This document shows, piece by piece, positions 1-32,377 of a stretch of 64,000 nucleotides of DNA (positions are counted from its first letter, which is position 1; each line of letters begins with the position of its first letter). The DNA is from Haliotis rufescens. Taxonomy: Eukaryota. The stretch covers positions 56,916,001-56,980,000 of the forward strand of contig NW_025964112.1 in assembly GCF_023055435.1 (NCBI RefSeq), in the 5' to 3' direction. The translations under genes and the position numbers were made by a program. Under the pieces are notes generated by a model, which was not told the origin of the DNA, searched no databases, and was given only the letters and a program-made list of their open reading frames with translations.

Positions 1-157
1 TGCTTTACCATTATAAGTTATATTCTACAGTTAATGCCCCTTTTCTTTACACTATCAAAAATGGAATACTGGTTTTCCTACATATTGTCTTGTATTGAGG
101 ACGACATTTCTTTTAGTCTTGAAACAAAGAATTCATATATTCTGTTTTCACACTTAC

Positions 158-184
158 GTGAAGAGGAAACATATGATCGCCGTC
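158..184 (-). CDS. Micro-exon, 27 nt, (R)RRSYVSSS; last exon visible in the window
   Basis: Identical exon with intact CAG/GTAAGT; no stop reached. Confidence 0.72.
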
Positions 185-3100
185 CTGTAATAAAATTTGA
201 AGTGGTAAATGTGATAATCTTCATAGTACTGACCATAATTTAACTATAGATGACACAGCTCTTTTGATGTATATATTATTTTGGTGGTGATTCATATGTT
301 AGTTGAAGGTTTGAAATTTGGATTCCAAAAACATAGGATGTATATTAGACCAAGCTAACAATGGGAGTATTTATGTTTTATGAAATTGATGGTTTTAAGT
401 GATATTTGAAAAGATTTTATCCTTTATCTCTTGAAACAACAAGGTCAATAATATCTCTTATTGTTTGGTTCTCACACATAGTGCTAGAAACATATGATTG
501 CCGTCTTGTAAAGTAATAAAAAAGAACATTAATCATGATCTAATGCAACAATAATCAGGCCATAAATGATACCTAATTGTATGAAGGAGTTTTAGATATT
601 TGTGTTCTTTTTCATCTTCTATTGACTAAAAAACATTCGGGATTAACTCGGTACAAGTGGGAAATAGATTAATCTTACAACAATATTCATTCTGTGCATG
701 TATGGATATGAGAAGTTTGCATTGTCAAAAGATAAATTTAGTGTTGAATATATATTACATTAAACTTTATTTATGCATAAACTCTCGGGCAAAAGAAACT
801 ATACACCCATGTTTGATGGTAAGTAAAACTGGACAAACAAGAAATGGTTATTCGATGGGAAAGTATTTCGCACGGGTGTCGTAGTTATGTTTTGGATCTT
901 AAGTTTGTAGTGATTCGGCGACTGATTTAGCCTAAATACATTTTGATAACGATTGTTATTTTTTGATCAAATCAAACTTTCAAGAGTATATTTCTTGTTT
1001 GCCCGGCAATATCTTACAATCTTAATGAAATGACAAAAGCATGTTTTATGCAACATTCCCTTCATTATTATAAGCTATATTGCGCCGTTAATGTTGTTTA
1101 CTTTATACTTTCAATAATGGATTAGTGGTTTCCTAAATATTGGTTCTTTATTTAAGCAAATATCCTTTGACACTTCAAACCAAAATATATACACCCTCTT
1201 TTAACACTCACTGGAGTTGGAACGTCGACCTGTAATGCAATGTTAAGAAACAACTGTTAAACCTTCATGATACTGGCCATAATTCAACTAAACGTAAAAC
1301 AGTTCCTTTCCTGGTTTTATGTTAGGCTGTATACAAATATGGAGAATGTTTCTGATACTGGTTTCCTAAATTCATCATCCACTAAAATGAAACAAATTCT
1401 TAGCCTATAAGAGACAAATGGAAAATAGTTTAAATGTATTATAATCTTCATTCTGATGATGTGACGATATTAAAAGATTGCAATTAGTGTTACACATAAA
1501 TAATATTTGACTAATTTCTAGATGTCTACCCGAAAAGGTGTTGTCACTGTTATATACGATATTACGAAAATGACAAGAGTGACAAGTGCAAACGATGCTT
1601 TACCATTATTAATGATGTTCTACAGTTAACGCCCCTTTTCTTTACACTATCAAAAATGGAATAATGGTTTTCCTACATATTGTCTTATATTGAGGACGAC
1701 ATTTCTTTTAGTCTTGAAACAAAGAATTCATATATTCTGTTTTCACACTTACGTGAAGAGGAAACATATGATCGCCGTCCTGTAATAAAGTTTAAAGTGG
1801 TAAATGTGATAATCTTCATAGCACTGACCATAATTTTTATGTTAGGCTGTATACAAATATGGAGAATGTTTCTGATACTGGTTTCCTAAATTCATCATCC
1901 ACTAAAATGAAACAAATTCTTAGCCTATAAGAGACTAATGGAAAATAGTTTAAATGTATTATAATCTTCATTCTGATGATGTGACGATATTAAAAGATAG
2001 CAATTAGTGTTACACATAAATAATATTTGACTAATTTCTAGATGTCTACCCGAAAAGGTGTTGTCACTGTTATATACGATATTACGAAAATGACAAGAGT
2101 GACAAGCGCAAACGATGCTTTACCATTATTAATGATGTTCTACAGTTAACGCCCCTTTTCTTTACACTATCAAAAATGGAATAATGGTTTTCCTACATAT
2201 TGTCTTATATTGAGGACGACATTTCTTTTAGTCTTGAAACAAAGAATTCATATATTCTGTTTTCACACTTACGTGAAGAGGAAACATATGATCGCCGTCC
2301 TGTAATAAAGTTTAAAGTGGTAAATGTGATAATCTTCATAGCACTGACCATAATTTTTATGTTAGGCTGTATACAAATATGGAGAATGTTTCTGATACTG
2401 GTTTCCTAAATTCATCATCCACTAAAATGAAACAAATTCTTAGCCTATAAGAGACTAATGGAAAATAGTTTAAATGTATTATAATCTTCATTCTGATGAT
2501 GTGACGATATTAAAAGATAGCAATTAGTGTTACACATAAAAAATATTTGACTAATTTCTAGATGTCTACCCGAAAAGGTGTTGTCACTGTTTTATACGAT
2601 ATTATGAATATGACAAGAGTGATAAGTGCAAACGATGCTTTACCATTATAAGTTATATTCTACAGTTAATGCCCCTTTTCTTTACACTATCAAAAATGGA
2701 ATACTGGTTTTCCTACATATTGTCTTGTATTGAGGACGACATTTCTTTTAGTCTTGAAACAAAGAATTCATATATTCTGTTTTCACACTTACGTGAAGAG
2801 GAAACATATGATCGCCGTCCTGTAATAAAATTTGAAGTGGTAAATGAATGTGATAATCTTCATAGTACTGACCATAATTTAACTATAGATGACACAGCTC
2901 CTTTCATGTATATATTGTTTTGGTGGTGATTCATATGTTAGTTGAAGGTTTGAAATTTGGATTCCAATAACAGAGGATGTATATTAGACCAAGCTAACAA
3001 TGGGAGTATTTATGTTTTATGAAATTGATGCTTTTAAGTGTTATTTGAAAAGATTTTATCCTTTATCTCTTGAAACAACAAGGTCAATAATATCTCTTAT

Positions 3101-6100
3101 TGTTTGGTTCTCACACTTAGTGCTAGAAACATATGATCGCCGTCTTGTAAAGTAATAAAATAGAACATTAATCATGATCTAATGCAACAATAATCAGGCC
3201 ATAAATTATACCTAATTGTGTGAAGGATATTTAGATATTTACTACAGAAATGACAAAAAATGTGTTTTAACGCAATATTCCCTTCATTAGCATGTTACAG
3301 AGTTAATGTTGTTTACTTTACACTATGAAAAATGGAATAGTGGTTTCCTAAATATTTGTTCTTCATTAATGTAGATATCCTTTGACACTTGAAACAAAGG
3401 ATTTTTATACATCCCCTTTTCACACTTACTGGAAGAGGAACGTCGACCTGTAATGTTAAGAAGCAACTTTTAGAAATTTTAGTTTTAAATATTTACATTT
3501 TAATACTCATTCTGAGCATGTATTGATATGAGCATAATTATGTTTCATCAACGATAAGATGACATCAAATTTTATCCTCAAGTTCTGCATGTTATTATTT
3601 TATATTGTTTCGTGTGACGATTCTTTTCAATACATAATAAGAACTATGAGAGATAAGACATTACATCACTGACGACCACAAGTGCTAAAGCAAGGGAAAG
3701 AAGTTAATATCAACATTATTTAATCATAGAAAGAAGAAGCAAGTGTTTTAACACATTTGAAACTTCACAAATACCTTTTTTTGACGTAATAAACGCGCCG
3801 CTCTAAAAAGCGCCCACGGCGATATTTGCTAATATATTAGCTAGTGAACAATCCCAATTAGCATCCCTTCCGATTGATCAATGTACACAACACTTATTTA
3901 TTCGCGTAAAATACGCACTCGTGTGTTATATGCACCCTTAATTATGAGCAATTAAATTCTGGTAAAATGTATCTCTCGTATATAAACATTTCAGGCTGTC
4001 AGCATAAACCACAAAATTTATCTTTCAACCCTGGTTTATTTTCATCAAAATAATATTCTAATAAGAGCCACCTATTTCTAATTTTGAGAGCGCCCTTGGC
4101 GCTTATTACGTCGAATACGGTATCTATCAGTAATACTACTTTTCATTTACGCCACTATTACGGAAAAGGTCGAGATATTGATACATAATCATGATTATTA
4201 TAAGACAATCATCGCATTTACTTGAATCAGGATGGAAACTACGAAATTCTGAGGAAAGTAAAATGTTGTGACATATTGATGCTTTGTTCTTTCAAATAAT
4301 TTATATCATGAGACTCAGTGACGTTTTTACAGTCTTCTTATTATGTGTTTGTCAATGAATTACATCCAGGCAAAGGTGTTACCAAAACATGGATTCTTAT
4401 ATCACTCGAAACAGAAATCAGCTAATACAGATATTTTTTGCAACCACAATAAAATATGACCTTCTGAAATATATAAAAGCGTCAAAACCTCTGCAATACC
4501 TAACACAAGTGCGATAGCCTATCGGCACGTACATTACAAGACGTCACCACAGCGAAAAAGTATGAATAAAATGAAGTGGTCAAGTTATTGTCATCGTCGG
4601 TTGAACTTGTCCTTAAAGGTATGTTTATACATTTGATTGCTTGGTTTTAAGGATTTTGTTTATAAAAACAAAAACAACAACAATAAAATTAGCTTAAACA
4701 TGACAAGCGTTATTGCCTTAACTTGGGTAACTGGGAAGCCATACCACTAAAAGCAGGAAGTTATACTGACACCCCTCTTTATACACGTTTTACAAGGATT
4801 ATCAGGTTATCGTGTTACACTATGTTATGTATAAAGGCACCAATTACGTGTGTTTAAGATAAATTCATTCTACATATTCTTACGTGAAGAGGTCTGTTTA
4901 GAATCTGTAAAAATAGAAAAGGATTAAGTGAGCTGTATCGAAACCTGCATCACCACCTATATGCAAAATATGACACATAAAACTCAGTTGTTGATACACT
5001 GCATCCAGAAAATCTGTAAGAGAACAAAAAGTAAGAACTTAAAACTACTTAGGAGCGCTGCATAATGCTACTATTTCTAGAAGTCACATTTAATTTTCAT
5101 CTCAATAAGTTCAGTAGTGAGAGAGAAAAACTCTCGCCGTGTTTGCGGCTATCTTTCTAAAATCGATGTCAAGGGCGAGATCATGCATTGACACAATGTA
5201 AACATTACCGATAATTGTTTTGCATTTCAGCGTCTTGGTTCCATGATGTCTTGGTTTGTGTCCAAAAAGGATTTGATAAACCCTTCTCTGACTGATTAGT
5301 GTATAACACTGTTTCACCTTATTTGATAAGCAAAAGATGGGTACCACCGACAGTAAGAAAACTAAAAGTATGAGCCACTGGCTATTGTATTCTCTTGATA
5401 TTCTGAAGAGCCCTGTTTGTGGATTTGTATTAGTCATAACGTAATAAAAGCCTAATAAAATCAGTTAGAGGACAACGCATGCAATAACGGAATGGAATTA
5501 CAAACTACAAACAAATATCCCCAGATATATTCATGATCTCTGACGTGTTTTCTTCAAGATATAACAATAATGGGTCTAATAAACAAGAGATGATACCTAG
5601 ACATATTTTATATCCTTAAAAAACAAGAAACGCATAATAATATAAACAATGAAATTATCAAATGCTCAGCCGAAACGATACGTAGGTTTTACTGAGTAGA
5701 ATCGCCAAATGACTTACCTTTTACACTGGAAGATTTCAGCGATCTTCCTACAAGAAAATTAATGCAAAAATTATAATTCTTTTATCTATAAATATTAATA
5801 ACGCATTTGAAGATTTGACTTCTTTTTTTCAAAGATATTATATATTTCAGTTATGTGATAAATCTTAAACACAATGTTTGCATTTACAAATTAAAGCTTA
5901 TATTCTTAAAATTATACAAAAAGATTAGAAATATACTTACTTCGTGTAACTGCAAAAAGGTAAAGATACACACATTAGTATATTTGAAATATGATTATTA
6001 AAGCCTATTATAAACTAGAAACTGATAGAGGAAAATAAGATATTTTCTATTTCACAGAATTGGCGTAAATCCATTACATTTCCATTTATATATATTTATG

Positions 6101-9100
6101 GTCATAGTTCAGATTATAGCTATAAGAACGCAAGTGATGTATAGCAAGATCTATGAATGGTTAACACATTTTAATGTATAGATATAATGTAATGTATACA
6201 AACTCGTACCTTCACAGTGCACATTCTTTGACATAAGTCAAACGTTCACGCCGTTGTTGAATTAAATGGTTGTCAGAAGAAGGAGTCATTGCGGTATATT
6301 AGAATATTCAGTGTACAATGCTGCTGTAAATGCTGCTCATATCAATTTTATCGACAGACGAGGAATACTTTTGGAATCTAATAAATTCATGTTCTGAAGA
6401 AACATTCTAGACATTTCATAACAAATCCGACTCATAATTGTACACTATAGTCATAAGGAAAACGGCGCGTGTATGTATGATACATTCATGTAACAAGCAG
6501 TGGCGCTTAATTTGGACATTGGTGCACATGACGTCGCGTGTCAAGCTGCCTTTATGTTGAGGTACAAATGGTTGGTTGGTTACATGAGGTTGGTTGGTTC
6601 AGCATGTTAAGCGCGCCAAGGGCATAGACGTCTACGTGAATGTCTCGAAACGTATACCTGATGATGCAGCTTATCGGTGTCTGTCACGACTGACTATTTC
6701 GTTAGGGATGAATCTATACATTCATGAGTCCAGGTGCGTAAATGTAACATAGTGATTCTACGTAATTATATGCATTTTAACTGAAAAGCCAATGTAATAT
6801 ATATCTAACTCTGCGTCTGAAAAGAGAAAACATTGTAAACAAAGCATTAGTGTTCTTCTGAATGCGATAAAAACGAGAAATTGGGACATAGGTCTGAAAT
6901 TATCGTCCATGCGCGTGTCTCATCATTTCAAAATGATCGCAATATTGATGTGTGTAATATGTGCATTATCGTAGGAAAATGATGTTATCTCATGCCATGA
7001 CATCCAAATTGTTGAATACTTAGTTAATATATTAATCAAGGGATATGGGATTTTTTAATTAAACATCTGGATATTCCGATCTTTGAATAAGTGATTGCTT
7101 ACTTTATGTTATCATCTTTGAATATTTGTTTGCTTAGTGATAGAAATTATAGGTATGGAATATCTTTTAAGATTTGGTTTACAGACACATAAGTCTTATT
7201 CATCTACATTCGGAACATGTCGCTTCAATGTGTTTTCGAGATGGAGAAATTAATTATGCTGGTCTTAATGCAAAACCAACAGTTATCATAAAAGTTATTG
7301 AAAATTTAAAACAAAACTATTATGACGAATATAGACTAAATGACTTTACACTCTGTTCAGTGTCCTAAGTGTGTACACTCAAGCAACATTTCTGGTGTCC
7401 ATCGCCTTGATCTTGCTGAAATTGCTAAAAGTGGCTTAAGCCATACTCACTCACCCACTCAGTCACACACATAAAACAAACACCTATTAACCATCCATTT
7501 TAATGCGTACTGGGCTAAAACAAATCTTACACCTCATCTGCTTTCCCTTTCAAACTGATGTGCATCTCTATTGGTAGTGGAGAGGCATTTCACCAGAACT
7601 TGTGTACAAAACAAATATCGCTAAGCAGACTTTGAATCTTTTTCCGTTTCTTCAAATGAAAAAATATCTTAAAAAGTTAATAGGTTCTTTACAGCCCAAT
7701 TAAACACCTATATACCTTAACTCTTTTAAGAAACAGAGGGTGGTTTAGAGTTGTGTGTTTCTGAGAAATCACAACATGATGAATAAGAACATGACCACAT
7801 AGTTACATTTGTGATGGGTCTACTTTGGTAAAGGACTTACAATATTTAATTTGATGCAGTCTGGAATTACTAATTTTGCTTTCTTTTAAATTTATGTCAA
7901 GACATTTATACTCAATATGCTTGTAACACAAAAACTGTCAACTATGATTTCGTGAATCAGTGAAATATATGGGGGCTTTCCACCCCCACCCCACACCCCA
8001 CATCTCCACCCACACCTACAACCCTCCACGGCTACCTAATTTCCTTCGACGTTTTCTTTCCTTCTTGCTCTTACGCCGATTCTTGCCGCTTTTACGTCTT
8101 CTGCCTCCTCGCCTTTTACCCCTGCCTCTCCGTTTTCCGATCTTCTTGCGCTTACGCCGATTCTTGCCGCTTTTACGTCTTCTGCCTCCTCGCCTTTTAC
8201 CCCTGCCTCTCCGTTTTCCGATCTTCTTGCGCTTACGCCGATTCTTGACTCGTTTTCCTCCACGCTTACTGCTCGGGCCCCTTCTCCCTGTTTTGTTTCG
8301 TTTTCCCGTAGCCTTGGTACGTTTGCGGTTTCGTTTCTTTCTCCCTCCTTTTCGTTTTCCTCTGCTTTGACCTGTATTGTCTGAAACACACGGAAAGAAC
8401 GAATACTTATCAGTAAGGAATGCCGAAGGGAAACAGTTGTTTATGAACATATTTTAGTGGTATTACCGAGTAAAATGGTTTATGGAGTTGTCTCCCTTTC
8501 ATATCTGCCAACAGTGGTCATGGCGGTAGAGGACGCCACACAACCACCGCTAGCAAACCAACTTCGTTGCAATGCAGTTGATGTTCGAGTTTTTCCGCAA
8601 TTCAGAGGAATGAAGAAAACGTGAAGAAGTAATTCAGGTATCATCGGCTTTGGCGAAGAGTTGTTTTCACCGATAGGCCCAGCGTGTCTGGGTACAGTTA
8701 TAAGTCGAACAGATGTAAAAGTGTTTGGATGGGAATATCAAGCAGATAGGTGGAACTGTTCTACCTAAGCATGTATTCACACTAGTTTCATACATGTATG
8801 GTACTGCTTGTTATATCCCTTCCATCTAAAGGACAAGCGACAGCCGTCTCATAAAACGTCTCATAAAACCTAAGTTTCAGTATATAACCTCTTCACCAAC
8901 ATTCAAAGGAAGAATATATTGTTTTCTTCTCATATCCCTTACGGGTATATAGAGATTACGATACGGGTGTCTGTCGGAAACCGTTTTTCTTACGAGTTGT
9001 TTCAAAACGTAGCTGACGAGTGAATGCGAGTTTGATACGTTTATAAACAACGAGTTGTTAGATAAATTGTGTACGAGAGCAGTAAACTGTTTCTTACAAA

Positions 9101-12100
9101 TCATAAAATCGCACAATTTTAGCATCGATTAGATGCATATTTGATCTATTCGCATAATGGCAGTGGCGCATTAATATATAACACAACGGTCACATGTGAC
9201 GTCATCCGTCTTACTGCTCACTTGGTCTGATGTGTCTGTCACATTAAATATTGGTTAAACGGACCGCCGTCGAATTCGATCTATCTTCCATACGATGCTT
9301 TGAAATAATGTGTTTTAGTGTATACTTCAGTGCGGAAGAGAAGTTGAGAAAAGTGATATTTTCACTGCAGTGAACATAACACTTTGACGGAAACCAACCC
9401 CTCTTTGCTGTATTTTTTTTTAATTTTCTGTATATAATCGTAATAATAGTCCATTTATATGGCGCTGTACTCCATGCATAAGCTTGCTCCAAATACTTAG
9501 ACATTGTTACCCCGGTCAGTGGATCAGTGTGTACACGATATTCATTCTTAGCTCCCTTGGGGGGTATACAACCCAAGCTGCCCGTGAGGCGCTAGAAGGT
9601 TAACAGTCATAGCCATCTCATCCTACCGGGTACCCATTCCCTGCTGGGTGAACAGAGGCCTATTACGAGCAAAGTCATTTTCCTAAGGTGACACCACATG
9701 TTCTACATGTGCTTTTGTGGGGGGGCTGGAGTACATACGCCTAACCAGATTGGTTACACATGCTGAGAAGAGATTCTGAAATTGCCGAGCATTTTGTTAT
9801 TTGTCGTTTGTTGTATGACGCCGCACTCAGCAATATTCCATCTACGTAACGACGGCCTGGAATTAATCGAATCTGGACATGAAAATTCAGTGAATGATAA
9901 TATGCACAACGTCATTTGCGGTCGGAGTACGATGACAGGCAGTCAACGATCACCGATCGCTGACCATGCGATCCTTTTAATCGCTGCTTACGGCCAGCAT
10001 AGGTGGTCCTATTCTAACCCGGAATCCCCGAAGGGATGGTAGGGGGTTGGTTTGGGTGATCGCGAGTAATAGTCTAGATAACGATGCTTTCAAAGCAATG
10101 ATTTGATACAGAACTGATCTAAAGTTTCAGATCTATTCTTACAGTGAGTGAGTTGGATTTAACGCCGCTTTTAACAGTATTCCAGTTATATCACGGCGTG
10201 TCAGCTTAATGTGGGAGGAAAGCCCGGAGTGATGCAGGTCTCAGACGTTTACCATTTCGGCGAAACATAATCGGGGCGAACCGGGATTCGAACTCACAAT
10301 CATAGGGTTCTGGCGTCCCCAAGGGACGCAACTCTGCACAGCGAATCGCTGCGCCTTAGTCGACTGGGCCACCCGTGCCCCCTTTTATTCTTAGAATGTG
10401 TGTAAACGTGAAGGGATGTACGAAAAGGCGGGTCTCAGTTGAGCTAAACATTAATAACTCAAGAATAGTAATAAAACTATTTTAATGACCATAAGAAATA
10501 TTGCCTGAAAGCAAAGGTCATTGTCCGATTCCGACTGTAATACTAGTAGATAGTAAAAAGAATGTTTTCATTAATCACTATCAAATAGTGATGAAATCAG
10601 GTGTTCGCCGAAAGGTGGGCGTTTCCTACCACACCATTGGCACCCGTCACAAACACACGTAAAGGCAAGTCAGCAAACACGGGAACACGTGGTACAAGTT
10701 GAAGTAGGGAATTGCATCGGACATAAGTTTGGTCACTGATGCGTCAAATTTGGAAATGGCCTTCACTTGTCTACCTTAAAACTTTTCGAAAGCTTTACTA
10801 AGGCCTGGAATGCTGTAGCCCTGATCAAAAAACATTTTAACACGAATTTTTGAATTATTCGTAGAAAGAGAAAATATACCTTTTCGATTTCCAGAAGCAG
10901 TCTTACTACGCTGAGCTCCAGCTGAAAATAATAAGCGTAATTTATTGAAATAGTCATATCATAATAGAATGTTCCCAGAACTAAAAAAGTGTGTATCAAC
11001 TGACGCATATCTCCAAACAGCATAAACCATTTCCACAACTTAAGTAGCCATTTGTATTTAATCAGAATACCCAACCATGTGGATCTTTTATTGGCATTTA
11101 GAAGTTAGATGAACATGAATACATGACACTTTTTATAATCTAAAGACAAAAGCCAGCATCTTCGTACCCAGCGTATACTCTACTGTGGTTTAACCATATC
11201 ATTAACCGCAAGTGGACATCTTGATTGTCTTATTGTTATGCTGTCACCACAGTCAGCTCTTTGTCATCACACTCAGCCCAATTACTACACCTTCATTGTA
11301 CTTAATTCGCTTCTCTCCCTTTAATACCCTTGGGTTCCGCGTTTAGTATTATATACTACAGTGAGGAAGACTGTGTTTGAGAAAAGTTATATTTTCACTG
11401 CAGTGAACATACCACTTGATATTTCACTGCAGTAAAAAATAACAATTTGACAGAACTATTGTCATACAAGAGTTACCTCCCCGCAAATTGTCTCCCTTTA
11501 TCGTAAGTGTTTGGCAAGTACACAAACTGTTGGCTTCTTTTTAAAGTTAGTTCAACAATGACAAGGGAAAATAAATGACATTTATAGAGTTAATATTTTC
11601 TGTTTTGTTATTTTCTTGAAAATGTTTCGATATAAACTAAATTTCTCATGTAACTCGTCAATCGAGACTGTTCGTTTCGCAAAGCGCCATTTCTGTTACT
11701 TGAACAGCCGTGTCGTTGCCACTTGTGAAAATATCTCCTTTCCCTCGTCACTCCATGAGAAAAAACATGATATTTCACTCGACACTGATTTAACATCTAT
11801 ATCTTTGTGCCGTATCAAACTTGTATGAACATGTCAGTTTGTATATATATGTTAACTCAAACGCTTACTCAGTATTAATCTGATTAAGTGGCAGGAAGAA
11901 ACGTCGTTACAGAGAATAAAGAAGTTTTTATCAATACCAAAAAGTGTCATGTATTCAAATATAGTTGTCGAAACATGTTAAAGTAATCCCTATTTTGATT
12001 GTATATAAATCAGACGGGATGTGAGTTGAAATGGGGATTAACGTTGAGTTCTCTCTCGCGTTCTCTAAGTAAAACCTGTTTTAATAAAACAAGAGGTTTC

Positions 12101-15100
12101 CCCTTGTGCCAGTATATTATGACAGGGGACGAATCTTGATACTCTTTATGTCCATATTTACAACTAGATAACGTTCGGCATGCAGCAAAAGAACCTTGAT
12201 TTAGAGTTCAACAAGATTCTGGTTTCATGCGAAATTGTGGGACACATGGTTGCAGCAAGTTCAACTTTATATATGATACTATCTACATGCAGCAATGGGA
12301 ATCTAGAGTATTAGTTCGACAAGGTTCTGGTTTCATGCAAGAGGTGGTAAGAACTGAGACATTATCGTCCATGCATCATTTCACGATGATCGCAAAAGAT
12401 TGTCGTGTGTAACATGCGCACAATGAAATGCAAAGGATGTTACCTCATACCATGGCATCACAATTATGGAATACTTGCTTAATTTATTAATAAAGGCATG
12501 CAGTTCAAGACCTGGGATTTGTGATTATTCATTATCTTTGAAACTGAATATAAATCGTGATTGACAAAGACTGCATGGCTTTACAAGTTGTTCAATATTA
12601 TTTGTACGCACAAAAACAAACACTTTTTAACCATCCATCTTAATGCGTGTTAGGGGCAAATGGAAACTTATGCCGAATTTGCTTTCCTTTTCAAACTGAT
12701 GTACAGTATCTATGGGAGTGGAGATACGTTTCACCAGAACTTGTGTAAACTCCCAAAAAATGCTTAGCAGAATCGGAATCTTTTTTCAGTTTGTTCAAAT
12801 GAATGAAATATCCTAGAAAGTCATTGGGTTCATTTTCATCCCAATTACACATCTATATACCTTAAAATTGTTTGCAAAAAGTGGGAAGTTTAGAGTTGTG
12901 TGTTTCTGAATCACAATATGATAATAAGAACATGACCACATAGGTACATTTGTCATTGAGTATACTTCTGTAATGGATATAGAACTCTAAACTACTTTCA
13001 CAATTATTCAGTTGCACGTTTCATTAACTTTCACAATTTTCATAGCTTCAAAACAATAATTTGTAGCAACACTATCTTCCCTTTTTTTTGTAAATGTTAA
13101 CTACAAACGGTTTATGTTCACAAAATCCTAACACGAAGTAATATAAAAGAGGTCAAGGATATATCATGCATTGATCCTATTTCTGTGAATTAGTGTTACA
13201 CATCATGCAAATTCTATCCCATGCATATCTCAGTAATGTTACCTCCGCGGTTTCTTTCCCGAGCTCCTGCAGAAAGAGTAAGTCATATATTTATTCTTGT
13301 TTTAAACGAATGAGAAGCAAAAGAGAAAAGTACTTACCAAAGAGTGGCAATGCACCATTGTCGAATGTCTTCTTCTCTTGCCAATTGGTCTTGGGTGACA
13401 CAACTCGCTGTGCAGAGTTGCTTCCCTTAGTCCTTCTAGGGTATACTGGTTGTTCGAATCCCGATTTTGAATCTTGGCCTGTTATCCGATCCGCGGTTTC
13501 GTGTTTCCACGCCGTGATGTAACTGACGTACTGCTCAGAATGGCGTAAAAAAATCACGCACACTCGACACACGCACACTACGCCTAGTCTCCATGCAAGA
13601 GGTGAGGTGAGGTGAAATGGGGTTTAACGTCGCGTCCAAGATTATTGCACTTATATAGCGACGTGCATGCACGTGTATGTATGTGTGAGGCTGCTTGTAC
13701 TAGTCCGGACTAATGCCGATTTATAGTGCTAGCTCACTGAGATACCCTGCCGCAGTTTAACATGAATACCCCGCTCAGAGTGAGTGAGTGAGTATGGTTT
13801 TACGCCGCTTTTAGCAATATTCCAGCAATATCACGGCGGGGGACACCAGAAATGGGCTTCACACATTGTACCCATGTCGGGAATCGAACTCGGGTCTTCA
13901 GCGTGACGAACGAACGCTTTAACCACTAGGCTACCCGACCGGTAACGGTAGACACAGTATACTGTCTCCGAGCCGACCAGTCCTTGTTTTAGCCCCTTAA
14001 TGCCGAGCGCCAGACAAGGTAACAACAAGTACCATCTTTTAACGTCTTTTGGTATGACGCGGCCGGGGATCGAACCCCGGACCTTCCGCTCTCCGGGCGG
14101 ACGCTCTACCACTAGACCACGGAGGCGGTCCTCCATGCAAGAGACTTAATTGTGGTGTGATATTGCTGAAAGATTGCTCACAGCGGCGTAAACCGATATT
14201 CAATCTCCAGTAACATAGTTCCATTGTAGGAATAATCCGTTTACATTTAGTTAAAATAAAACTATGTGTTTTTTAACGTTATAAAATGATTGTTTCGTTT
14301 AGTGATAAATGACACCGTTTATTTTCCAACACGAACTGATTAGAAACAAAGGGGCTTTTAGTCGTTAAATGTTCACGAGTTAAATGTTATCTCAAGTTAT
14401 CGCACCAGAAGAACACTGTACAACAACATCTGATACAAAAACAGTTCTTACCTGATTTGGACCCTGTGGATTTCGAACCTGTAAATAGAAAAAAAATTCT
14501 CAATATTGAAAAGGCAACATTTATCGCATACCCTCAAGTATGTCTACATTTCTGAAATGTTGCATTACCTGAGGAATTATATTTATACAAGGGTTGTCAG
14601 TGTGCTTCCACGGCAGTGTCATTAAAGCAGCTTGTATTTCTAATCCTTATTTTTGTAGCTTACAATCACCCTGACAAATAGTAACTATCTGCTGATGTTA
14701 TCTTTGGAATGCTGGTACATATATTTCCAACGGAACCCTTATAAGTATGTCATATACATTATGTTCTCCTTGAAAACTATCATGTATGTAATAAAATCTG
14801 CTTATATGGTGTTTTTTTACAACTACTCAACTTGATCTGTCGTCTATTGATGTACTCAACTTGTGTCTGTCCCTTTGTGAGCATTGCAACTTTACTGAGA
14901 GTTAAATGGTACAGAATAATCATTTTCAAATCAAGCAAAAAGTACTTATCCCCAACATTTCAACATCATGTTTTATTGCTTACGGCAAAAGAAAATTACG
15001 TTGACCCCAAACTTCTTTAATTACGACGTCAATCCATGCATCTTCGTCAGCGGTTAGTCGTTTCAGGTCAGAATTGGTGATATTTGACTCATTGTGTTAT

Positions 15101-16899
15101 GTTTCCTACTGCTATGTCAAACACGTTGGACATTGACTCCGGAAATAATACGGTTTTTTAAAGTTTTTAGATGTTCTCCTTCTGTGGTAACATGGTAATA
15201 CATAAGTTGTTTACTACCAATGATATTCCATATGCTTACATGGAGAGTGTATATGACTCATTTGGTAAACCTAACAAATTAGAATTAACAACGACCATCA
15301 TATATTTCATTCGAACACTAGCATTCATTAAAGGGTTTGGAAAGGATCTATCTGTAAATGTTGTGCTATTGAGGAAATGGTTGACAGTAGAATCTCACTT
15401 AAAGCACTTTATATTTAACGTCGCATCGGTAATACATCAGCAAAATACCGATTGATATCATTTGACGAGTTAAGACATTGAAACAAAATTCATTAAAGGT
15501 AAATATACGATAATAAGAAATAATCCTTGGAGCATTATTCAAAATTAAAACAGAAATATACAATACAGTAATTACGTTTGCAACTCTGCGCAGTTATATT
15601 CAATCGTACAACAACAATTCAAAGATCTACAGGTAAATAAAGAATGTGTTAAAAATTAGTTCTAAAGTACAAATGAGTTAGGTCTTTAATCGGAAAATTG
15701 TTTCAGAAAATAAATGACAAGAACCTACTAAAAAGGTATGGTAATTTAAGCAATCAGACATTGGAAATTTGTACTTTTAGCTATTTCGAGGAAAAATATT
15801 TATTGTAAATATTGACTGAAATAACTCTAATATGTCTATCTGATCAATCTCCATACATTGAAAATATTTCGTGATGGAGCTTGCAATATTCGGTTCCACA
15901 CAAATATATGAGCGAGCGAAAACAGGAAAATGATGTTTAAAATTCTGGAAATGAAGATACATGCTTTTGACTAAATGCGTGGCTAGTTTTAATAAATATA
16001 GAGATAATCAGTGAAAATAATTTATTAGTAAACAAGTGCCTATAAGGATATCATGAGTTTAAACTTGTCCAGACTGTTCCTCTGTGTCATTTTCGCAAAA
16101 TTATTTTGACTAACCCTTTGACACCTGCACACGTATAACAATAATATTTAGATTATATTGGGTACAATGTTCGAAGGCCATTTCTGTTTTCCCCGCTGTG
16201 ATATTGCTGGAATATTGCTAAAAGCGGCGTAAAACCAAACTCCCTCACTCACTCGCTTAGATTGTATAATGTTTAGAATTTATAAACATAATGAAAATAG
16301 AACGCTTTTCTCCAGGTACAAATATTGCTTTGTAGTTAATAAAAGCGACAAAACTATTGTCATGATCAAAAGAAATCTCTGTTAAAGAATATCAAATAGC
16401 GCCTAAATGTGGCATCTAAACTATACTTTTTCTGCATATTAGTATATATGCGTGGTCAAGTGCCCTGCTAGCGAAGTAATAAGAGCCGGTGAGTGAGTGA
16501 TTGAGTTGGGTTTAACACATTATCAATATTAACTCAATATATTAAAACAACAACTACAGCCTTCTGCATTACCCAGATTGTCAGAAGGGCTGTATTCCTG
16601 GTAGCAAACCCGGGCACTCTCCCAATGTCGGTCAACAGATTGGGAGGTACCAAACCTGAGGCACCGAGAACAATGGGGAGTCGGACAACTTGACACTTAA
16701 GATGCGTGCTCTGCATATTTGCCATGTTTTTCCTGAATCTTGTCAATTACATTAGTGTCAAAAGGGACAGAAAATTCAATAATAAAAATGATTTCATTTG
16801 ATATATCAAAAAGGACAAGATCAGGTATGTGGCCTGGATGGGTCTGAGGCTGTATACGGTCCTATTCCCACTAATTTTGTATTTATCATTTTCCACTCT

Positions 16900-16956
<57 letters not shown>

Positions 16957-17842
16957 AAATAGTATTAGTAGTAGTAGTAGCAGTAGTAGTAGAAATAGTA
17001 CTAGTATATAAATTAATCACAATCAAACAATTTGTGGAACAAGTTGGTATAAAGCATATGATCAATTGAAATATTTATTATATACCAAGTTAAGAGCGTA
17101 CAAAATTAACAGTTAAACTATAAGCAGGGCTTGCAGGTAGTGAAAGCTGTCAGTGTCGAGAGTAATTCAAGAGTGTCCTTTCTTATTCAATATCGACAAC
17201 ATGATTATACAACATATATATCAAACGGCATGTATGTGATACACTGGTACAATTTCTATATCAGTTATCAACACTGCATTACCTTTACACTGTTCATTAT
17301 CACATATTCCTTTGTAGCTAATTTGCCCAGCTGAAGATGTATTGATATTCTCCAAAGTTAACATATTAATGGTCCCTACTGCTGTTGTCATTCCATAGCT
17401 TACTGCTGTTGCCCACTAAACTAACTAAAGAGTCCACCGTGAGTGGTTAAGGTCTTTCTAATGGGCATATGTTACAAAGGTGAGACCGACACTTAGTCAA
17501 AGGTAATCAATAGCTAGTTTATACTAGTTCACATAGGTTTCAACAGATAGACAGTACGATCCGCTTGAGCTGCATTTAACAGTCTCAGTCACACCTATTA
17601 AATCACAAGCCAAGACAATGCAAAAAGAAACCTTAAATATCCTTCTCCTTAGTCATGAAATCGTCTTTCACATGTTAGAATGAAAAAAAGTTGTCTACAT
17701 TACCTTACTGACGAAACACTATTTCCTGCCTCCTATTAACTAACTCATAATCCCTTTTAAAGTAAGAAATGAGCTTACTTTGTGCAGACGAAATGGCCAC
17801 CAGGGTGACAACCACCAGAAGGAGAAGTATCCACCACCTCAT
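158..17842 (-). CDS. Multi-exon micro-exon gene for a secreted Arg/Lys/Ser/Gly-rich basic protein (3' end lies beyond window start). Model: join(17842-17779,14478-14452,13266-13243,10921-10880,8380-8036,5949-5941,5747-5718,4904-4884,4248-4222,3447-3430,2819-2793,2299-2273,1779-1753,1229-1212,184-158)
   Basis: Manual splicing gives 733 nt, open throughout: MRWWILLLLVVVTLVAISSAQ-SSKSTGSKS-GARERNRG-AGAQRSKTASGNRK-DNTGQSRGKRKGG...RKRRRKL-VTR-RRSLKSSSVK-DSKQTSS-QFRSFHPDS-SRRSSS-RRRSYVSSS-RRRSYVSSS-RRRSYVSSS-RRRSNS-RRRSYVSSS. Every internal exon is flanked by YAG and GT, is a multiple of 3 and is phase 1-1. No transcript evidence available. Confidence 0.75.
481..505 (-). pseudogene. Decayed micro-exon (RRSYVSST-like) with mutated splice sites
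   Basis: Homologous to the 27-nt exon, but acceptor CAG is CAA and the GTAAG donor is lost. Confidence 0.55.
601..1025. repeat. Dispersed repeat inserted in one cassette copy; related to about 46500-46918
   Basis: Absent from the paralogous cassette at about 3240; shares aaagaaa(c/g)tatacacccat...acaaacaagaaatggttattcg with 46805-46870. Confidence 0.55.
1212..1229 (-). CDS. Micro-exon, 18 nt, (R)RRSNS
   Basis: CATTGCATTACAG|GTCGACGTTCCAACTCCA|GTGAGT; paralogue of 3430-3447. Confidence 0.72.
1753..1779 (-). CDS. Micro-exon, 27 nt, (R)RRSYVSSS (duplicate cassette)
   Basis: Identical exon with intact CAG/GTAAGT. Confidence 0.72.
2273..2299 (-). CDS. Micro-exon, 27 nt, (R)RRSYVSSS (duplicate cassette)
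   Basis: Identical exon with intact CAG/GTAAGT, 520 bp from neighbouring copies. Confidence 0.72.
2793..2819 (-). CDS. Micro-exon, 27 nt, (R)RRSYVSSS
   Basis: TTTTATTACAG|GACGGCGATCATATGTTTCCTCTTCAC|GTAAGT. Confidence 0.75.
3120..3144 (-). pseudogene. Decayed micro-exon (paralogue of 481-505)
   Basis: Plus strand cacacttag-tgctagaaacatatgatcgccgtc-ttgtaaag; both splice sites degenerate. Confidence 0.55.
3430..3447 (-). CDS. Micro-exon, 18 nt, (S)RRSSS
   Basis: CTTAACATTACAG|GTCGACGTTCCTCTTCCA|GTAAGT; phase 1-1. Confidence 0.75.
3771..4122. mobile_element. MITE-like element with terminal inverted repeats
   Basis: Left tacc...gacgtaataaacgcg is inverted relative to right gcgcttattacgtcgaatacggta; TA ends. 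Confidence 0.5.
4222..4248 (-). CDS. Micro-exon, 27 nt, (Q)FRSFHPDS
   Basis: TTTTACTTTCCTCAG|AATTTCGTAGTTTCCATCCTGATTCAA|GTAAAT; phase 1-1. Confidence 0.65.
4884..4904 (-). CDS. Micro-exon, 21 nt, (D)SKQTSS
   Basis: TTTTCTATTTTTACAG|ATTCTAAACAGACCTCTTCAC|GTAAGA; 3' end CCTCTTCAC shared with the 27-nt exon family. Confidence 0.8.
5718..5747 (-). CDS. Micro-exon, 30 nt, (R)RSLKSSSVK
   Basis: TTTTCTTGTAG|GAAGATCGCTGAAATCTTCCAGTGTAAAAG|GTAAGT; phase 1-1. Confidence 0.8.
5941..5949 (-). CDS. Micro-exon, 9 nt, (V)TR
   Basis: CCTTTTTGCAG|TTACACGAA|GTAAGT; phase 1-1. Confidence 0.65.
6890..7835. repeat. Intronic segment paralogous to 12355-12975
   Basis: Collinear diverged blocks (attatcgtccatgc..., ttcaaactgatgt..., tttcaccagaacttgtgta, aataagaacatgaccacatag); this copy carries a SINE fragment at about 7365-7470. 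Confidence 0.85.
8036..8380 (-). CDS. Large Lys/Arg-rich exon (345 nt, protamine-like composition); could instead be terminal, with stop at 8016-8018
   Basis: Acceptor TTCTTTCCGTGTGTTTCAG at 8381-8382, in phase 1 with the K/R-rich ORF 8016-8450; internal 81-bp duplication (8071-8151/8152-8232); weak phase-1 donor AG|GTAGCC at 8035. Confidence 0.8.
   Translation of the reverse strand, partial: TIQVKAEENEKEGERNETANVPRLRENETKQGEGARAVSVEENESRIGVSARRSENGEAGVKGEEAEDVKAARIGVSARRSENGEAGVKGEEAEDVKAARIGVRARRKENVEGN
9540..9720 (-). mobile_element. Old SINE fragment with Nin/Deu-like core
   Basis: ccgggtacccattccctgctgggtgaacagaggc resembles the conserved Nin/Deu SINE domain (recognised from memory). 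Confidence 0.45.
10143..10382 (-). mobile_element. SINE family B (tRNA-Leu-like head, ACTC tail), internally deleted copy
   Basis: A box TGGCCCAGTCG and B box GTTCGAATCC; homologous to copies at 22716, 47783 and 52968. Confidence 0.85.
10880..10921 (-). CDS. Micro-exon, 42 nt, (A)GAQRSKTASGNRK
   Basis: TTATTATTTTCAG|CTGGAGCT...AATCGAAAAG|GTATAT; phase 1-1; composition matches neighbouring exons. Confidence 0.7.
13243..13266 (-). CDS. Micro-exon, 24 nt, (G)ARERNRG
   Basis: CTTACTCTTTCTGCAG|GAGCTCGGGAAAGAAACCGCGGAG|GTAACA; phase 1-1. Confidence 0.75.
13375..13580 (+). mobile_element. Old diverged SINE family B copy
   Basis: tcgctgtgcagagttgc.tccctt, gttcgaatcccg and cacgccgtgat...ggcgtaaa match family B. 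Confidence 0.7.
13602..14130 (-). mobile_element. MetaSINE-like tRNA-derived SINE with a nested family A SINE
   Basis: tRNA head GACCGCCTCCGTGGTCTAGTGGTAGAGCG...GGTTCGATCCC followed by Meta-like GTCATACCAAAAGACGTTAAAAGATGGTAC; TSD ctccatgcaagag at 13589-13601 and 14131-14143. Confidence 0.8.
13779..13941 (-). mobile_element. SINE family A (tRNA-Asp-like head), nested
   Basis: Near-identical to copies at 18966, 50861 and 51234. Confidence 0.9.
14452..14478 (-). CDS. Micro-exon, 27 nt, (S)SKSTGSKS
   Basis: TTTTTTTTCTATTTACAG|GTTCGAAATCCACAGGGTCCAAATCAG|GTAAGA; phase 1-1. Confidence 0.8.
16545..16746 (-). pseudogene. C-terminal remnant of an RLE-type (R4/R2-like) non-LTR retrotransposon ORF
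   Basis: PIVLGASGLVPPNL...VPG...MQKAVV resembles the PIVIGALG...QKAVL terminus of such elements (recognised from memory). Confidence 0.5.
16901..17005. repeat. (AGT)n microsatellite
   Basis: Seen directly. Confidence 0.95.
17779..17842 (-). CDS. Exon 1: start codon and signal peptide (MRWWILLLLVVVTLVAISSAQ)
   Basis: CACC-ATG context, basic n-region, hydrophobic core and S-S-A cleavage-like end; donor A|GTAAGC at 17778 in phase 1; TATA and CCAAT boxes upstream. Confidence 0.85.
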
Positions 17843-17968
17843 GGTGAAGATGTGGCTGTGGGCGACACTGGTTCCTACAACGTCGCTGTCACTGGTCAAC
17901 TGTCGTTCAACGTAAATGAATTCGGGAACGACCGCAGCGTTTGCCGTCAGGCCTTCTTCCAGCTCAGC

Positions 17969-18046
17969 TTTATACTCTCATTCCGTTACCTGATGTTCCA
18001 GGGCATCTTTCATTGGTTGAAACCTGACGGAAAACATTCTGATTGG
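17969..18046 (-). promoter_or_regulatory. Pol II core promoter of the micro-exon gene
   Basis: On the minus strand: TATAAA at 17969-17974 (about 130 bp upstream of the ATG) and CCAAT boxes at 18012-18016 and 18042-18046; a further CCAAT on the plus strand near 18093. Confidence 0.7.
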
Positions 18047-18965
18047 CTGAGACGTGATGTTTTGGCGAAGGGAGGACTTTTATTGCTATTGACCAATAGA
18101 ACGTAAGCCACATGATGATATGTATTGAATAGGCGTCTATGAGAGTCTATCAGACGTGGCAGACTGTATCAATAATCATGAAACGGGCATTGTTGCATAG
18201 GTGTAATGTAGCCACGAACGCCTTGTCAGTCTCCCTCTGCATATAAAGTAATCTTTCAAGTTAATCCTGTTTAACTGTTTCTTCTTGTTATTGTTGCCAT
18301 AATAGTTTATGTATTAGATAATGTTAAATCAATTTTTTATTATTCAAATGTTCATACAGTAACGGTAAACGATATATGCCTTCAGCGAAGTGTTTGGGTA
18401 CATAATTACATGGATAATATCAAATAGTTCCGTTATAGTAGCTACACGTATTCATAACTGGAATCACCCATAAGACAGCGATGTGTGATAGATGCAAGGA
18501 CAGGAAACTGAATTAATAAATATATTATTCAGAATCGCATGAAAAAATCTGAAAGTGAGAAATACTTGAAACTATATTAAAATCGTGCCGTTTATTTTGT
18601 TCTCATTTTCGATAACAAGAGCGTTAAACTCGTTGTTCAACAAACTAGTGTTATTCCCATGTACGTTACGCTATGCGCATTTTTGGTCTGAAACCTTATC
18701 ATAAATAGAATACACACGTTGCACGAATCACTTAAATGAGCGGCGCAGCCAAGTGTGAAATCTCAACGTCAGTCACGAGATGAGATACATGTTATTTGAA
18801 AAGAAAATGACAAGAATTATATTTATTATGTATTATCACTTATTTTTGGAGACCTAATTAGTATTTCATCAATACATGCATAATAAAGTTTAATAATCAC
18901 AGTTCAATGCTACCATGAACTCATCGACATGTTCCCGTTCTTCATCATGATACGATTTTTTAAGA

Positions 18966-19129
18966 GAGAGAGTGAGTATGGTTTTACGCCGCTTTTAGCA
19001 ATATTCCAGCAATATCACGGCGGGGGACACCAGAAATGGGCTTCACACATTGTACCCATGTCGGGAATCGAACCAGGGTCTTCGGCGTGACGAGCGAACG
19101 CTTTAACCACTAGGCTACCCGACCGCCCC
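18966..19129 (-). mobile_element. SINE family A, full length
   Basis: A/B boxes, GTC anticodon-like loop, TSD cgattttttaaga. Confidence 0.9.
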
Positions 19130-19433
19130 CGATTTTTTAAGATGTCAGCCTTCACATAAATATCATGGTAGGTTTGGGTTTCCATGGTTTGGTTGTGTAC
19201 AAGGTAGAGATGAAAACATTCATGTCCCTATGATATTAATGTCTTGAGCAACATGAATTGTTCGTATACCAACTACCGTTGAAGAAGAAAGTATTAATCT
19301 GATGGTAAGGATATTTCAAGGATTCACATCTCTTCAGAATTCGCTTCAAGTCTTTACTCTGAAAGGAATCAAACTATATATTTCAGCGGACCCATAATAC
19401 ATTATTTGTTAAGAATATACATCATAACTAGTG

Positions 19434-19510
19434 GGGGTGGGTGAGTTCGGTTTTACGCCGCTTTTAGCAATATTCCAGCAATATCACGGCGGGGGACACC
19501 AGAAATGGGC
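19434..19510 (-). mobile_element. 5'-truncated SINE family A
   Basis: 3' half only; TSD tcataactagtg. Confidence 0.85.
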
Positions 19511-22500
19511 TCATAACTAGTGAACGATATATTTATTTTTGCTAACCCTAAGGGCAAACTTTTGTTTTCAAGCAACTTCGGGAACAGATTATGGTTTATT
19601 AATACACACCAACATTGGCTCTAAAAAACGTGTGTCTTCAGATAACTGATGAAGGTGCTTTCACGGATACCTGTTAAGTCTCAGAGATGTATTTCTTAAG
19701 AAAATTTTTTATCTCAAAAGTATTTGAAATGGTTAATATATTTGAAGCGCCTGGAGTTCTACCGAATAAAGAAACTCTCTCAGAAATTGATGGAAAATTA
19801 ATTATGCTTCAAACTGTTGAAAAAAAAGAAATTGCCTGTTACAGCATACGTTGTTGAAAGATTGGTTTTTTTAAAAGAAATATATATATCAAGACTTATA
19901 GTTTTAATTAAAAATATAGGATCTAGTGTCTGCTGAATGGGTGAGCATCAATATGTTTTTTTACAGGTTTTTTATTATACCACTGGTGGGGCAGGATACG
20001 CACACCTTTTCGAGAAAATCTTGTATCATTTCTGTTTAATTGCGATTCATAAACACGTGCTGATGAAAAATGTCGGAGTCGTAGAATAGACTCTAGTTTT
20101 AGCACCTATTTCTAATGGACATGGAAATGGTTTTCTTGCTTTTATTGATAACACGGTAGGTGAGTTTATAGTTTGATGAAAGGTGATGCCGATCTTAGAC
20201 GTTCACAAACCAATGGTTATGATCAGTGCGATTTTGGGATTCGAACCCACGGTCATAGGATCATGGCATGCCCAAGGGACTCAACTCTGCACACCCCATT
20301 TAGACTACTAATACTCCAATTATTGTTACTGTCAAAATTAATTAATCCCGATACTATCTTGTCATTAGTGGAAAAGTAGACGTATATATGATCACATTTC
20401 CCAAAGTTAAATACTTGTATGCATATAAAGCCATTAGACTTATGTGTTCATTTAGGATATATGCGTGTGAATTTGCGTACCGTTCAATTGACGGAATCCT
20501 GTTAATACTTGCAGTATGTATTTTCAAATATATCATGCACGATTCAATCACACCACTAGAACTGTACAACGAAACCAATTATGTAAAAACGTCTATTCTG
20601 TTTAGGTATACAGACACGTAATACTTCTCGTGAGCGGCTGATGGAGTGTAGAGTTTCAACTGATTCAGTTATGATAAAATGGCAGAACCCTTTCCCATAA
20701 TCATAAGAAATCTCTGCTTAAAGGAAAGGCCATTGTACGATTCCAACTAAATCATAAAAATGTGTTTTTGTATCACTATCAAATACCAGGTGTATTCGAT
20801 GTCAGGAGATTTAAACATTTGAAACCTCCAACTGACCCCATCGGTTCCAAATGGAATTTCCGTGCATCAAATACTCAATAAAATCCGCAAATCTGAAAAC
20901 AAATAATATTTATCTCCTGACTCAATTACTCCCGCCAAATCGGTATCATTTGTTACAGAAGCTGATATATGTCAATGCTCATCGTTGGTAACGCAGAGGC
21001 AGTAAAGTGTTATTACAAAAGTTGGTAATGCAGACTAAGCATCTTGATAAGTTTAGAAAGTGGGCTGTCTAAATGTTACAGAAACATGTACCATTTTTTT
21101 ACCTGTTAAAACCCCCGTTAATATTGATCTTTTAGGTTTTGATACTGTCCCTAGGCATAACGTCAGCAACCACTCTTAATGTAGCCAACCAGCTGACGCA
21201 GTGATACATTCATGAAGGTGCTGTAATTACTAACGGAAATAGGCTCTATTATTCTGTATCGATGTTGAGAAAGTTGTATGGGACCAAGGTAGGGACACGC
21301 CACGCCAAGATGTGTGACTTAAGTTGGCATAGATGATGTACATTCATGTCCAAATTACTTTACCGCATGGTTTGTAATTGGCATTGACTGTGCGTGTTTA
21401 TTTCAAAACCTTCATGGTTTTGCAGCCTCAGCAAACTAGTCTGATGTGTTATAAACAAACAAACAAGTTTTGCTGTAGTCTGGATGTTTGGTTGGGAATC
21501 CACAACTCAATTAAAATAAAAGTCTGTCGCCATAAGTAGTTTCAGATCAATGTGTTGTCGTCTCATTTATGAACTCCTGATTTATTTAATCTAATATGGA
21601 AATATATTAGGGATATTTATCTGACGACACAGATCACCATTTGATACATTAGTACTTCTGCCAGTGTCACCTTTAAAACACAGCTCGATTTGTCGTGTAA
21701 GTAATTTTCTATAGCAGCATCAGTGTGTGTCTCTCGGATAAGTTACAACCTATTTAACAGCTCTGGTAGAGATTCGGAATTATCGAAAGCAACTGCGACA
21801 GGAACGCTGGTATTATCACTTTGATGAAAGATTGGATACATGTTGAACTATGTCAAAATCGACATAGGTGCCTACACCAGAAGAAAGAAAAGCAAATGCG
21901 ATCTTTGGTGGCCGTCACGCTTCTTTGCAGCAGGCCAAGTTTGGCAAACAATGATTGGTAATTATTGTTTGTTTCAGAAAGACGTTTTTGCACTTGGTCG
22001 ATCAAAACTTGAACATTTCTGCAGTATGCAATCTTATCGATGTGTTTACGTCTATACACTTTTAAAAGTATCCAAAATATGATTAGCTGTCTTCGCATTA
22101 TATAGAGAATCTAACTCTCGTGTCCTTTAATATCAAATATATCAACACGAGTTGATAAAAGTGGTAAAACTCCGTGGCTTGCTTCCCCTTTGATATATTT
22201 CATATGAAAAGACACGTGGGTGAGATTTTATTTACCATTTAACATAATTCTTCCATCTTTTTTTCAGTTTGGAGACAGTAATAAGAAGTGTTTTAAGTGT
22301 AAAAATTACTGCCAACAGCTTCAGTAGCAGAGCCATTATTGATGTCATTTGATTGTGACGTCATGGTAACCAATGATGTCACAATGGTCTTCAAAGCATT
22401 GTGATGCAATTTCACTGTAGCGATATCTACAATGTAGATATCGCTTGATCTCACACAAGCGATATCTCCTGTGGAACCAAGTTTTGGATGATAAAAAACT

Positions 22501-31492: not shown

Positions 31493-31599
31493 AATGTATT
31501 ATGTTAGCTTCTTGTCGTCACTTCGTCACGTCGAAGGGCCTGGTTCGATTCACAACATGGGTACATTGTGCTAAGCCCATTTCTGCGCCCCTCATTCTC

Positions 31600-32324: not shown

Positions 32325-32325
<1 letters not shown>

Positions 32326-32374: not shown

Positions 32375-32377
<3 letters not shown>

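Follow-up and report, generated by a model that had tools for sequence, protein, structure and literature searches.

A tandem array of intron-plus-micro-exon cassettes in a predicted gene for a secreted Arg/Ser-rich protein of the abalone Haliotis rufescens

We analyzed a 64,000-nucleotide (nt) stretch of the 1.33-Gb genome of the abalone Haliotis rufescens (C334:56916001-56980000, hereafter the window), the left edge of which holds a tandem repeat carrying 18- and 27-nt exon-like stretches on the minus strand. We consider it rather probable that this repeat belongs to a real micro-exon gene, in which an array of intron-plus-micro-exon cassettes forms part of a gene for a secreted Arg/Ser-rich protein, and the gene has probably grown by unequal crossover. 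A chance origin of the cassette pattern is excluded: a degenerate acceptor-exon-donor pattern had 37 matches in the whole genome, all at this locus and all on one strand, and the reversed control pattern had none. It is unusual for such very small exons to occur in about 39 copies, within a higher-order repeat, and in a mollusc. Array units are numbered by window position, with negative numbers for those to the left of base 1.

An earlier note, made from the letters of the window, had described 27-nt exon-like stretches within a 520-bp repeat and 18-nt ones in older, diverged units. A minus-strand pattern scan confirmed both kinds at the places it had given, with four 27-nt stretches lying between CAG and GTAAGT and two 18-nt stretches lying between CAG and GTRAGT (Table 1). 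The 27-nt exon translates as RRSYVSSS plus a split Arg codon. Direct-repeat analysis bore out the 520-bp unit, each copy with one 27-nt exon: the period is exact, with three units over 1315-2876 at 96-99% identity, and further matches occurred at spacings of 1595 and 2639 bp. The ~2635-bp duplication that the note had superimposed on this repeat as a separate event did not survive, since it equals 1595 + 520 + 520 bp, or one higher-order period plus two 27-nt-exon units. The units are, as the note had supposed, complete intron and symmetric micro-exon cassettes, of phase 1-1 throughout. Its suggestion of extending the search leftward to find a terminal exon was also fruitful, yielding a candidate ~24.4 kb to the left of window base 1.

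We listed the cassettes from the window plus 40 kb further left, labeling those with a 27-nt exon A, those with an 18-nt exon C, dead ones B, an A-like one with an 18-nt exon A', and the last one T. Positions 1-3470 of the window proved to be only the edge of the array, which reaches ~24.4 kb beyond base 1 (G000:C334:56891550-56919447) and measures ~28 kb in total. As assembled, there are 39 intact cassettes (19 A, 18 C, A', and T), giving 19 exons of 27 nt and 20 of 18 nt. In the order of transcription, which runs from right to left, they read C A A A C (B) A A C (B) A C (B) A A C (B), followed by eleven further A C pairs with a B after each and then by A' C C T. Spacings are 520 nt from A to A, 550 nt from A to C, and 1044 nt from C to A across B; the last two add up to the main period of 1594 bp, and the higher-order repeat of 1594/1595 bp comprises one 27-nt cassette, one 18-nt cassette, and one dead cassette, with extra 520-bp units added. 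The introns amount to 0.5-1 kb per cassette. The 520-bp unit had 23 matches in the genome, all within C334:56891646-56919440 and none elsewhere. The locus is a single head-to-tail series in which every intact unit has its full exon together with acceptor and donor.

The reading frame is kept across the whole series. Each cassette exon starts with two bases of a split codon and ends with one (phase 1-1), and the junctions into and within the array spell Arg in 39 of 39 cases (C+GT, C+GA, or A+GA). At the sole C-to-C junction, the second exon begins with GA rather than GT, and Arg is kept there too. Because every exon is a multiple of three and of phase 1-1, any number of cassettes preserves the frame.

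The young copies differ very little from one another. Compared with their consensus, introns deviate in 139 of 24,016 alignment cells (0.6%) and exons in 7 of 765 (0.9%), while the AG, GT, and +5G positions deviate in 0 of 165, where about 1 deviation would be expected. With divergence among them as low as 0.6%, these copies cannot serve as a test of selection and offer no statistical power to detect it. Their differences do follow position in the array. The farther apart two copies lie, the more they differ, from 3 to 12 differences in the A-to-C segment and from 7.5 to 20 in the C-to-A segment; variants are common to neighboring copies, as with a Tyr-to-Asn change in three adjacent A exons; and the A unit preceding C in every AA or AAA cluster has a haplotype of its own, giving two subtypes of the 27-nt unit. 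Neighbors are thus more alike than distant copies, and the repeat exists in more than one register (520 bp and 1594 bp). Read in this way, the variant pattern is the one that unequal exchange in two registers would leave in a real array, and unequal crossover at 520 bp and at 1594 bp would account both for the growth of the array and for its uniformity. It is unlikely that an assembler pasted in one consensus, because neighboring copies share copy-specific variants and differences grow with separation.

Among the older cassettes, in contrast to the young ones, exons and splice sites are set apart from the introns. We compared seven old lineages (A, A', the array C, the C cassettes at 3430, -23625, and -24209, and T). 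Mean pairwise intron identity is 55% upstream and 59% downstream of the exon (55-64% for introns overall), whereas the acceptor heptamer ATTACAG (-7 to -1) is 100% identical and donor positions +1 to +13 are 87-91% identical (87% for +1 to +6 and about 88-89% for +7 to +13). Gapped cells make up about 17-20% of the intron alignment, and the splice sites and the 18 shared exon bases that we compared have none. Conservation across the 500-column alignment is highest in two 12-nt windows, one on the acceptor and one on the donor. Secondary conserved blocks occupy the ~170 nt directly after the donor and the final ~60 nt before the acceptor, and the introns past these blocks cannot be aligned. Within the first ~170 nt, blocks conserved at 65-83% between old lineages include TTTGTTTCAAG and GAAACCAGTATTCC...GATAGTGTAAAG...CATTAAC (for example, at window positions 28-157 and 1082-1211 on the minus strand). 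These intron blocks are candidate signals that may help to define the micro-exons.

The exon differences among the old lineages resemble those of a coding sequence. Identity is 0.81 at codon position 1, 0.85 at position 2, and 0.61 at position 3, with changes falling mostly at third positions. Two conserved Arg codons are variously CGG, CGA, CGT, AGG, and AGA, and the conserved Ser codons are variously TCC, TCT, TCA, and AGC. The 19 base differences from the consensus produce 3 residue changes; a star-model simulation, which overstates the independence of the differences, expects 11 +/- 1.9, and 0 of 20,000 runs gave a number that low. By a parsimony count of events, 9 of 14 are synonymous (P = 0.04). 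The sole difference in exon length is one of 9 nt (the Ser-Tyr-Val codons), present in A and absent from its sister A' and from all C lineages, whereas in the conserved core of the cassette, 73 of the 79 pairwise gap runs lying outside the exon have lengths not divisible by three. The B cassette, with acceptor CAA, the donor G gone, and two 1-nt deletions breaking the frame, serves as a natural control. The third-position bias and the synonymous switching at conserved Arg and Ser codons point to coding constraint.

With these comparisons in hand, several further claims of the earlier note can be assessed. The older paralogues with 18-nt exons and a 9-nt in-frame difference are real, the difference being a single indel of the Ser-Tyr-Val codons. 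The statement that CAG and GTRAGT were retained while introns diverged agrees with the splice sites being the best-conserved positions against introns at 55-64% identity, and growth by unequal crossover fits the two registers, the two 27-nt subtypes, and the separation-dependent differences. Selection to keep frame was a more mixed case: the old lineages are constrained, but the young copies show no sign of it and their frame is automatic. The check that the note had proposed, of exon and splice-site conservation against that of introns, divides in the same way, favoring the idea among old lineages (acceptor 100% identical) and having no power among young copies.

The array lies inside a predicted minus-strand gene of ~42.6 kb, the model of which was read from the sequence. 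In the proposed order (Table 1), a TATA/CCAAT promoter would be followed by a signal-peptide exon, a few unique Ser/Lys micro-exons, a 345-nt Lys/Arg/Gly exon (the basic exon), and the 39 cassettes. The signal peptide MRWWILLLLVVVTLVAISSAQ was called by eye from its basic start, hydrophobic core, and small-residue end. Strong phase-1-1 candidate exons have a density of 0.42/kb on the minus strand at 3500-20000, compared with 0.05-0.16/kb elsewhere in the window. Three unique candidate micro-exons (of 21, 27, and 30 nt) have good splice sites and are also Ser-rich and basic, a makeup very unlikely to arise by chance (~1e-7 as a rough estimate against a background of ~9% Ser). At the other end, the last cassette has the donor GTATGT; if this donor is unused, the frame runs for 31 codons to a stop, and an AATAAA lies ~120 nt past it (C334:56891343-56891348). 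The last cassette would thus read through to the stop, with the AATAAA beyond.

Table 1. Features of the micro-exon locus on the window (negative positions lie to the left of base 1)
Positions	Strand	Feature	Details
1..3470	-	Upstream (5', right-hand) end of array	Order: 18-nt, dead, three 27-nt (520-bp units), 18-nt, dead, 27-nt
158..184	-	27-nt micro-exon, type A	
481..505	-	Dead cassette, type B	Lesions as at 3120..3144
1212..1229	-	18-nt micro-exon, type C	CAG before, GTGAGT after; (R)RRSNS
1753..1779	-	27-nt micro-exon, type A	
2273..2299	-	27-nt micro-exon, type A	
2793..2819	-	27-nt micro-exon, type A	CAG before, GTAAGT after; phase 1-1; (R)RRSYVSSS
3120..3144	-	Dead cassette, type B, 25 nt	Acceptor CAG to CAA; donor G lost; two 1-nt deletions
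3430..3447	-	18-nt micro-exon, older diverged type C lineage	CAG before, GTAAGT after; (R)RRSSS; first array cassette
4884..4904	-	Candidate unique 21-nt micro-exon	Phase 1-1; SKQTSS; last base C + GT of next exon = Arg
5718..5747	-	Candidate unique 30-nt micro-exon	Phase 1-1; RSLKSSSVK
5941..5949	-	Possible 9-nt micro-exon	Weak; could be chance
8036..8380	-	345-nt exon	Phase 1-1; 114 codons, Lys/Arg/Gly; 81-nt tandem repeat inside
10907..10921	-	Possible 15-nt micro-exon	Weak; may be chance
14452..14478	-	Candidate 27-nt micro-exon	Phase 1-1; SKSTGSKS; strong pyrimidine tract; GTAAGA donor
17779..17842	-	Putative first coding exon	ATG in CACC context; 21-residue signal-peptide-like MRWWILLLLVVVTLVAISSAQ; phase-1 end before GTAAGC
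17968..18046	-	Promoter-like stretch	TATAAAG 17974-17968; CCAAT 18016-18012 and 18046-18042; read directly
-23097..-23114	-	A' cassette	18-nt exon
-24433..-24450	-	Last cassette, T	

Summing composition and junction codons exon by exon, we obtained for the conservative model 44 exons and ~453 residues, with 35% Arg, 34% Ser, and 8% Lys. Of the 1360 coding bases in this model, 951 (70%) are in exons no longer than 30 nt, and all exons after the longer signal-peptide-like first one (17842-17779), leaving aside the 9-nt and 15-nt candidates, are of 18, 21, 27, 30, or 345 nt and of phase 1-1.

The basic exon has features of its own. Its donor is weak (GTAGCC), with a stronger in-frame alternative (GTAAGA) after 8075, and reading through the donor meets a stop at 8016-8018. 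It is single copy in its own genome and contains, at window 8061-8247, an 81-nt tandem repeat of 2.3 copies at 99% identity with a 27-residue unit; the gene therefore also appears to be growing by repeats inside an exon. Directly after the weak donor and the stop, a G-rich run (GGTGTGGGTGG...GGGGTGTGGGGTGGGGGTGG) occupies window 7985-8035 on the minus strand. This run is a possible G-quadruplex, which could influence whether the basic exon is spliced or read through to the stop. A common origin of the unique micro-exons (4884-5949), the regions beyond the array, and the array cassettes was considered and dropped, as a blastn comparison gave no match at E < 0.01.

If the cassettes are spliced into mRNA, the protein would end in a tail of the form (RRRSYVSSS-RRRSSS)n, and the product would be a secreted, disordered polyelectrolyte, perhaps phosphorylated on serine. 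Such a product might be secreted in bulk as mucus, adhesive, or matrix, or it might act as an antimicrobial polycation. More tentatively, and as a possibility that we hold with less than even confidence, the ~39 tandem 18- and 27-nt exons may all be spliced into one mRNA, with the number of exons varying between individuals and transcripts and the product being a secreted Arg/Ser polyelectrolyte of variable length. Such variation would be tolerable, because any subset of cassettes keeps the frame and rebuilds the Arg codon at the junction.

Several observations weigh against a real micro-exon gene of this kind. Exon variation among the young copies is no lower than intron variation (7/765 versus 139/24,016), and the intact state of these copies may reflect recent descent alone. 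The basic exon has a weak donor with a stop after it, and several of the unique micro-exon candidates, most of all those of 9 and 15 nt, could be chance matches. The window is full of minisatellites. The function, drawn from composition only, may be a different one. Protein searches, for which the query was the 114-residue basic exon alone, found it without a match among 5.8 billion clustered sequences (a word-indexed search with candidates of 63-200 residues) and among 1.84 billion cluster representatives, and without a Pfam family or an ESM Atlas cluster. Since it matches no protein, Pfam family, or Atlas cluster, the gene is unannotated; these blank searches are weak evidence against expression, because the 81-nt repeat may break short-read contigs.

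Much of this would also be expected if the array were a recent satellite-like amplification in or behind a short gene, with real exons, past or present, limited to the old cassettes that flank it. New copies would then mostly be skipped, or the mRNA would terminate behind the basic exon, with its stop at 8016-8018 and an ATTAAA at 7850, and the array would be intronic or 3' baggage or the gene would be dying. We regard this account as unlikely, although it deserves serious attention: the copies lie 0.6% from their consensus with exons kept no better than introns, a stop and a poly(A)-like signal come after the weak donor of the basic exon, other tandem arrays are numerous in the window, and the basic exon occurs in no database protein. 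It is harder to reconcile with each new unit having an acceptor, a donor, and flanking intron blocks that were long conserved in the old lineages; because the units carry those signals, a spliceosome that uses the old cassettes should see the new ones. Old intact cassettes lie on both sides of the array, a terminal cassette with a stop and AATAAA comes after it, the junction codons are all Arg, and broken splice sites are found in 0 of 39 copies.

Two other accounts dispense with the protein or with the gene altogether. Arrays of short exons with repeated introns are known from small nucleolar RNA (snoRNA) host genes, and their likeness to the present locus, together with the 65-83% conservation of the ~170 nt after each donor between old lineages, would suit a noncoding host transcript, such as one with an array of small RNAs in its introns, in which splicing is conserved because the introns or the RNA itself are needed. 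However, a search of window 1-9000 on both strands gave 0 Rfam matches at E <= 1, and no C/D box pair was seen on reading the intron, while the third-position bias, the synonymous codon switching at conserved Arg and Ser, and a frame continuous with the signal-peptide exon argue for a protein. We think a noncoding host quite improbable. The remaining account, already disfavored and in our judgment very improbable, is that there is no gene, and that splice-like motifs and an open frame arose by chance in an ordinary satellite or in a repeat of transposon origin, perhaps with copies added in assembly. The sequence is AT-rich, a setting in which AG and GT motifs are common, and the copies are nearly identical, but the pattern is restricted to one locus and one strand, the control gave 0 matches, the peaks of conservation coincide with AG and GT while introns are just 55-64% identical, the unit is not dispersed in the genome, and the copy-specific variants in neighboring copies speak against an assembler artifact.

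As a putative micro-exon gene, the locus resembles the micro-exon genes (MEGs) of schistosomes, which have a signal-peptide first exon followed by symmetric micro-exons between long introns (PMC10526429), and one of which, MEG-4/Sm10.3, first became known because its exons are repeated in tandem (Davis et al. 1988, as cited in PMC10526429 and PMC3961193). Like these genes, the predicted abalone gene has a signal-peptide first exon, coding sequence mostly in symmetric micro-exons whose lengths are multiples of three, much longer introns, and a low-complexity, secreted predicted product; as in MEG-4/Sm10.3, exon copies stand in tandem within the gene. It differs in its mollusc rather than flatworm host, in its Arg/Ser-rich product, and in the ~39 cassettes of a homogenized 1.6-kb higher-order repeat. 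Alternative splicing is the hallmark use of schistosome MEGs. The basic exon, which was the part searched, had no hit in two protein libraries or in Pfam, and because no sequence relationship to a MEG family was found, we treat the abalone gene as an analogue and not as a family member.

The growth of symmetric exon cassettes by unequal crossover is textbook biology, for example, in the kringle IV-2 repeat of human LPA. There, as proposed here, head-to-tail units of exon and intron stay in frame, expand and contract by crossover, and set the length of a secreted protein. Unlike the 18- and 27-nt abalone exons, which would encode a disordered repeat, the LPA units are 5.5 kb long with two ordinary exons that encode a folded domain. 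The predicted product also recalls the RS domains of SR and SR-related proteins, which share its Arg/Ser-dominated low-complexity sequence. SR proteins, however, are nuclear, with RNA-binding domains, runs of RS dipeptides, and ordinary exons, whereas the abalone model has a signal peptide at its start and units of RRR plus a run of Ser, and Pfam found no domain in its one long exon. In composition only, the product is also like phosvitin and the sandcastle-worm cement protein Pc3, both of them secreted, disordered, highly charged chains with serine runs broken by basic residues, and this likeness suggests a materials or antimicrobial role.

If the ~39 exons are indeed spliced into one mRNA, in numbers that vary between individuals and transcripts, the locus would be the first micro-exon "exon factory" at such a scale outside parasitic flatworms and a natural array in which to study how very small exons are recognized. 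Spliced cassettes would mean that a gene can lengthen by copying whole intron-plus-micro-exon units, with phase 1-1 exons and an Arg at each junction making any copy number or skipping translatable, and would extend the MEG architecture from schistosomes to molluscs. They would also offer 39 near-identical natural test cases for recognition of 18- to 27-nt exons, with conserved flanking intron blocks, and would flag a class of secreted, highly charged proteins overlooked by gene predictors and by tryptic proteomics. If the cassettes are not spliced, the locus would be a satellite seeded from exons and of local interest only.

A full-text literature search for Haliotis and micro-exon found no paper. 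By analogy with gastropod protamines, we had also considered a protamine-like nuclear protein for the Lys/Arg/Gly exon; the signal peptide at the start of the model led us to drop this idea, and a search of the literature for abalone and protamine returned nothing relevant. The shell proteome of Haliotis laevigata mentions basic, Ser-rich, disordered proteins (PMC6003135), and a shell-matrix link was rejected when nothing in that paper could be attributed to the present gene.

Elsewhere in the window, a 168-codon open frame at 27182-27688 on the minus strand has the look of a transposase remnant; Pfam found nothing in the minus-strand open reading frames at 27185-27688 and 13834-14136. Two runs of N interrupt the window, at 25293-25433 (141 bases) and 46919-47076 (158 bases). 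The interval 31136-49717 is crowded with minisatellites, with units of 53 nt (23 copies), 47 nt (42 copies), 41 nt (128 copies at 97% identity, 40436-45701), and 30 nt (49 copies, 48275-49717). These minisatellites have a strong GC skew and long spurious open frames.

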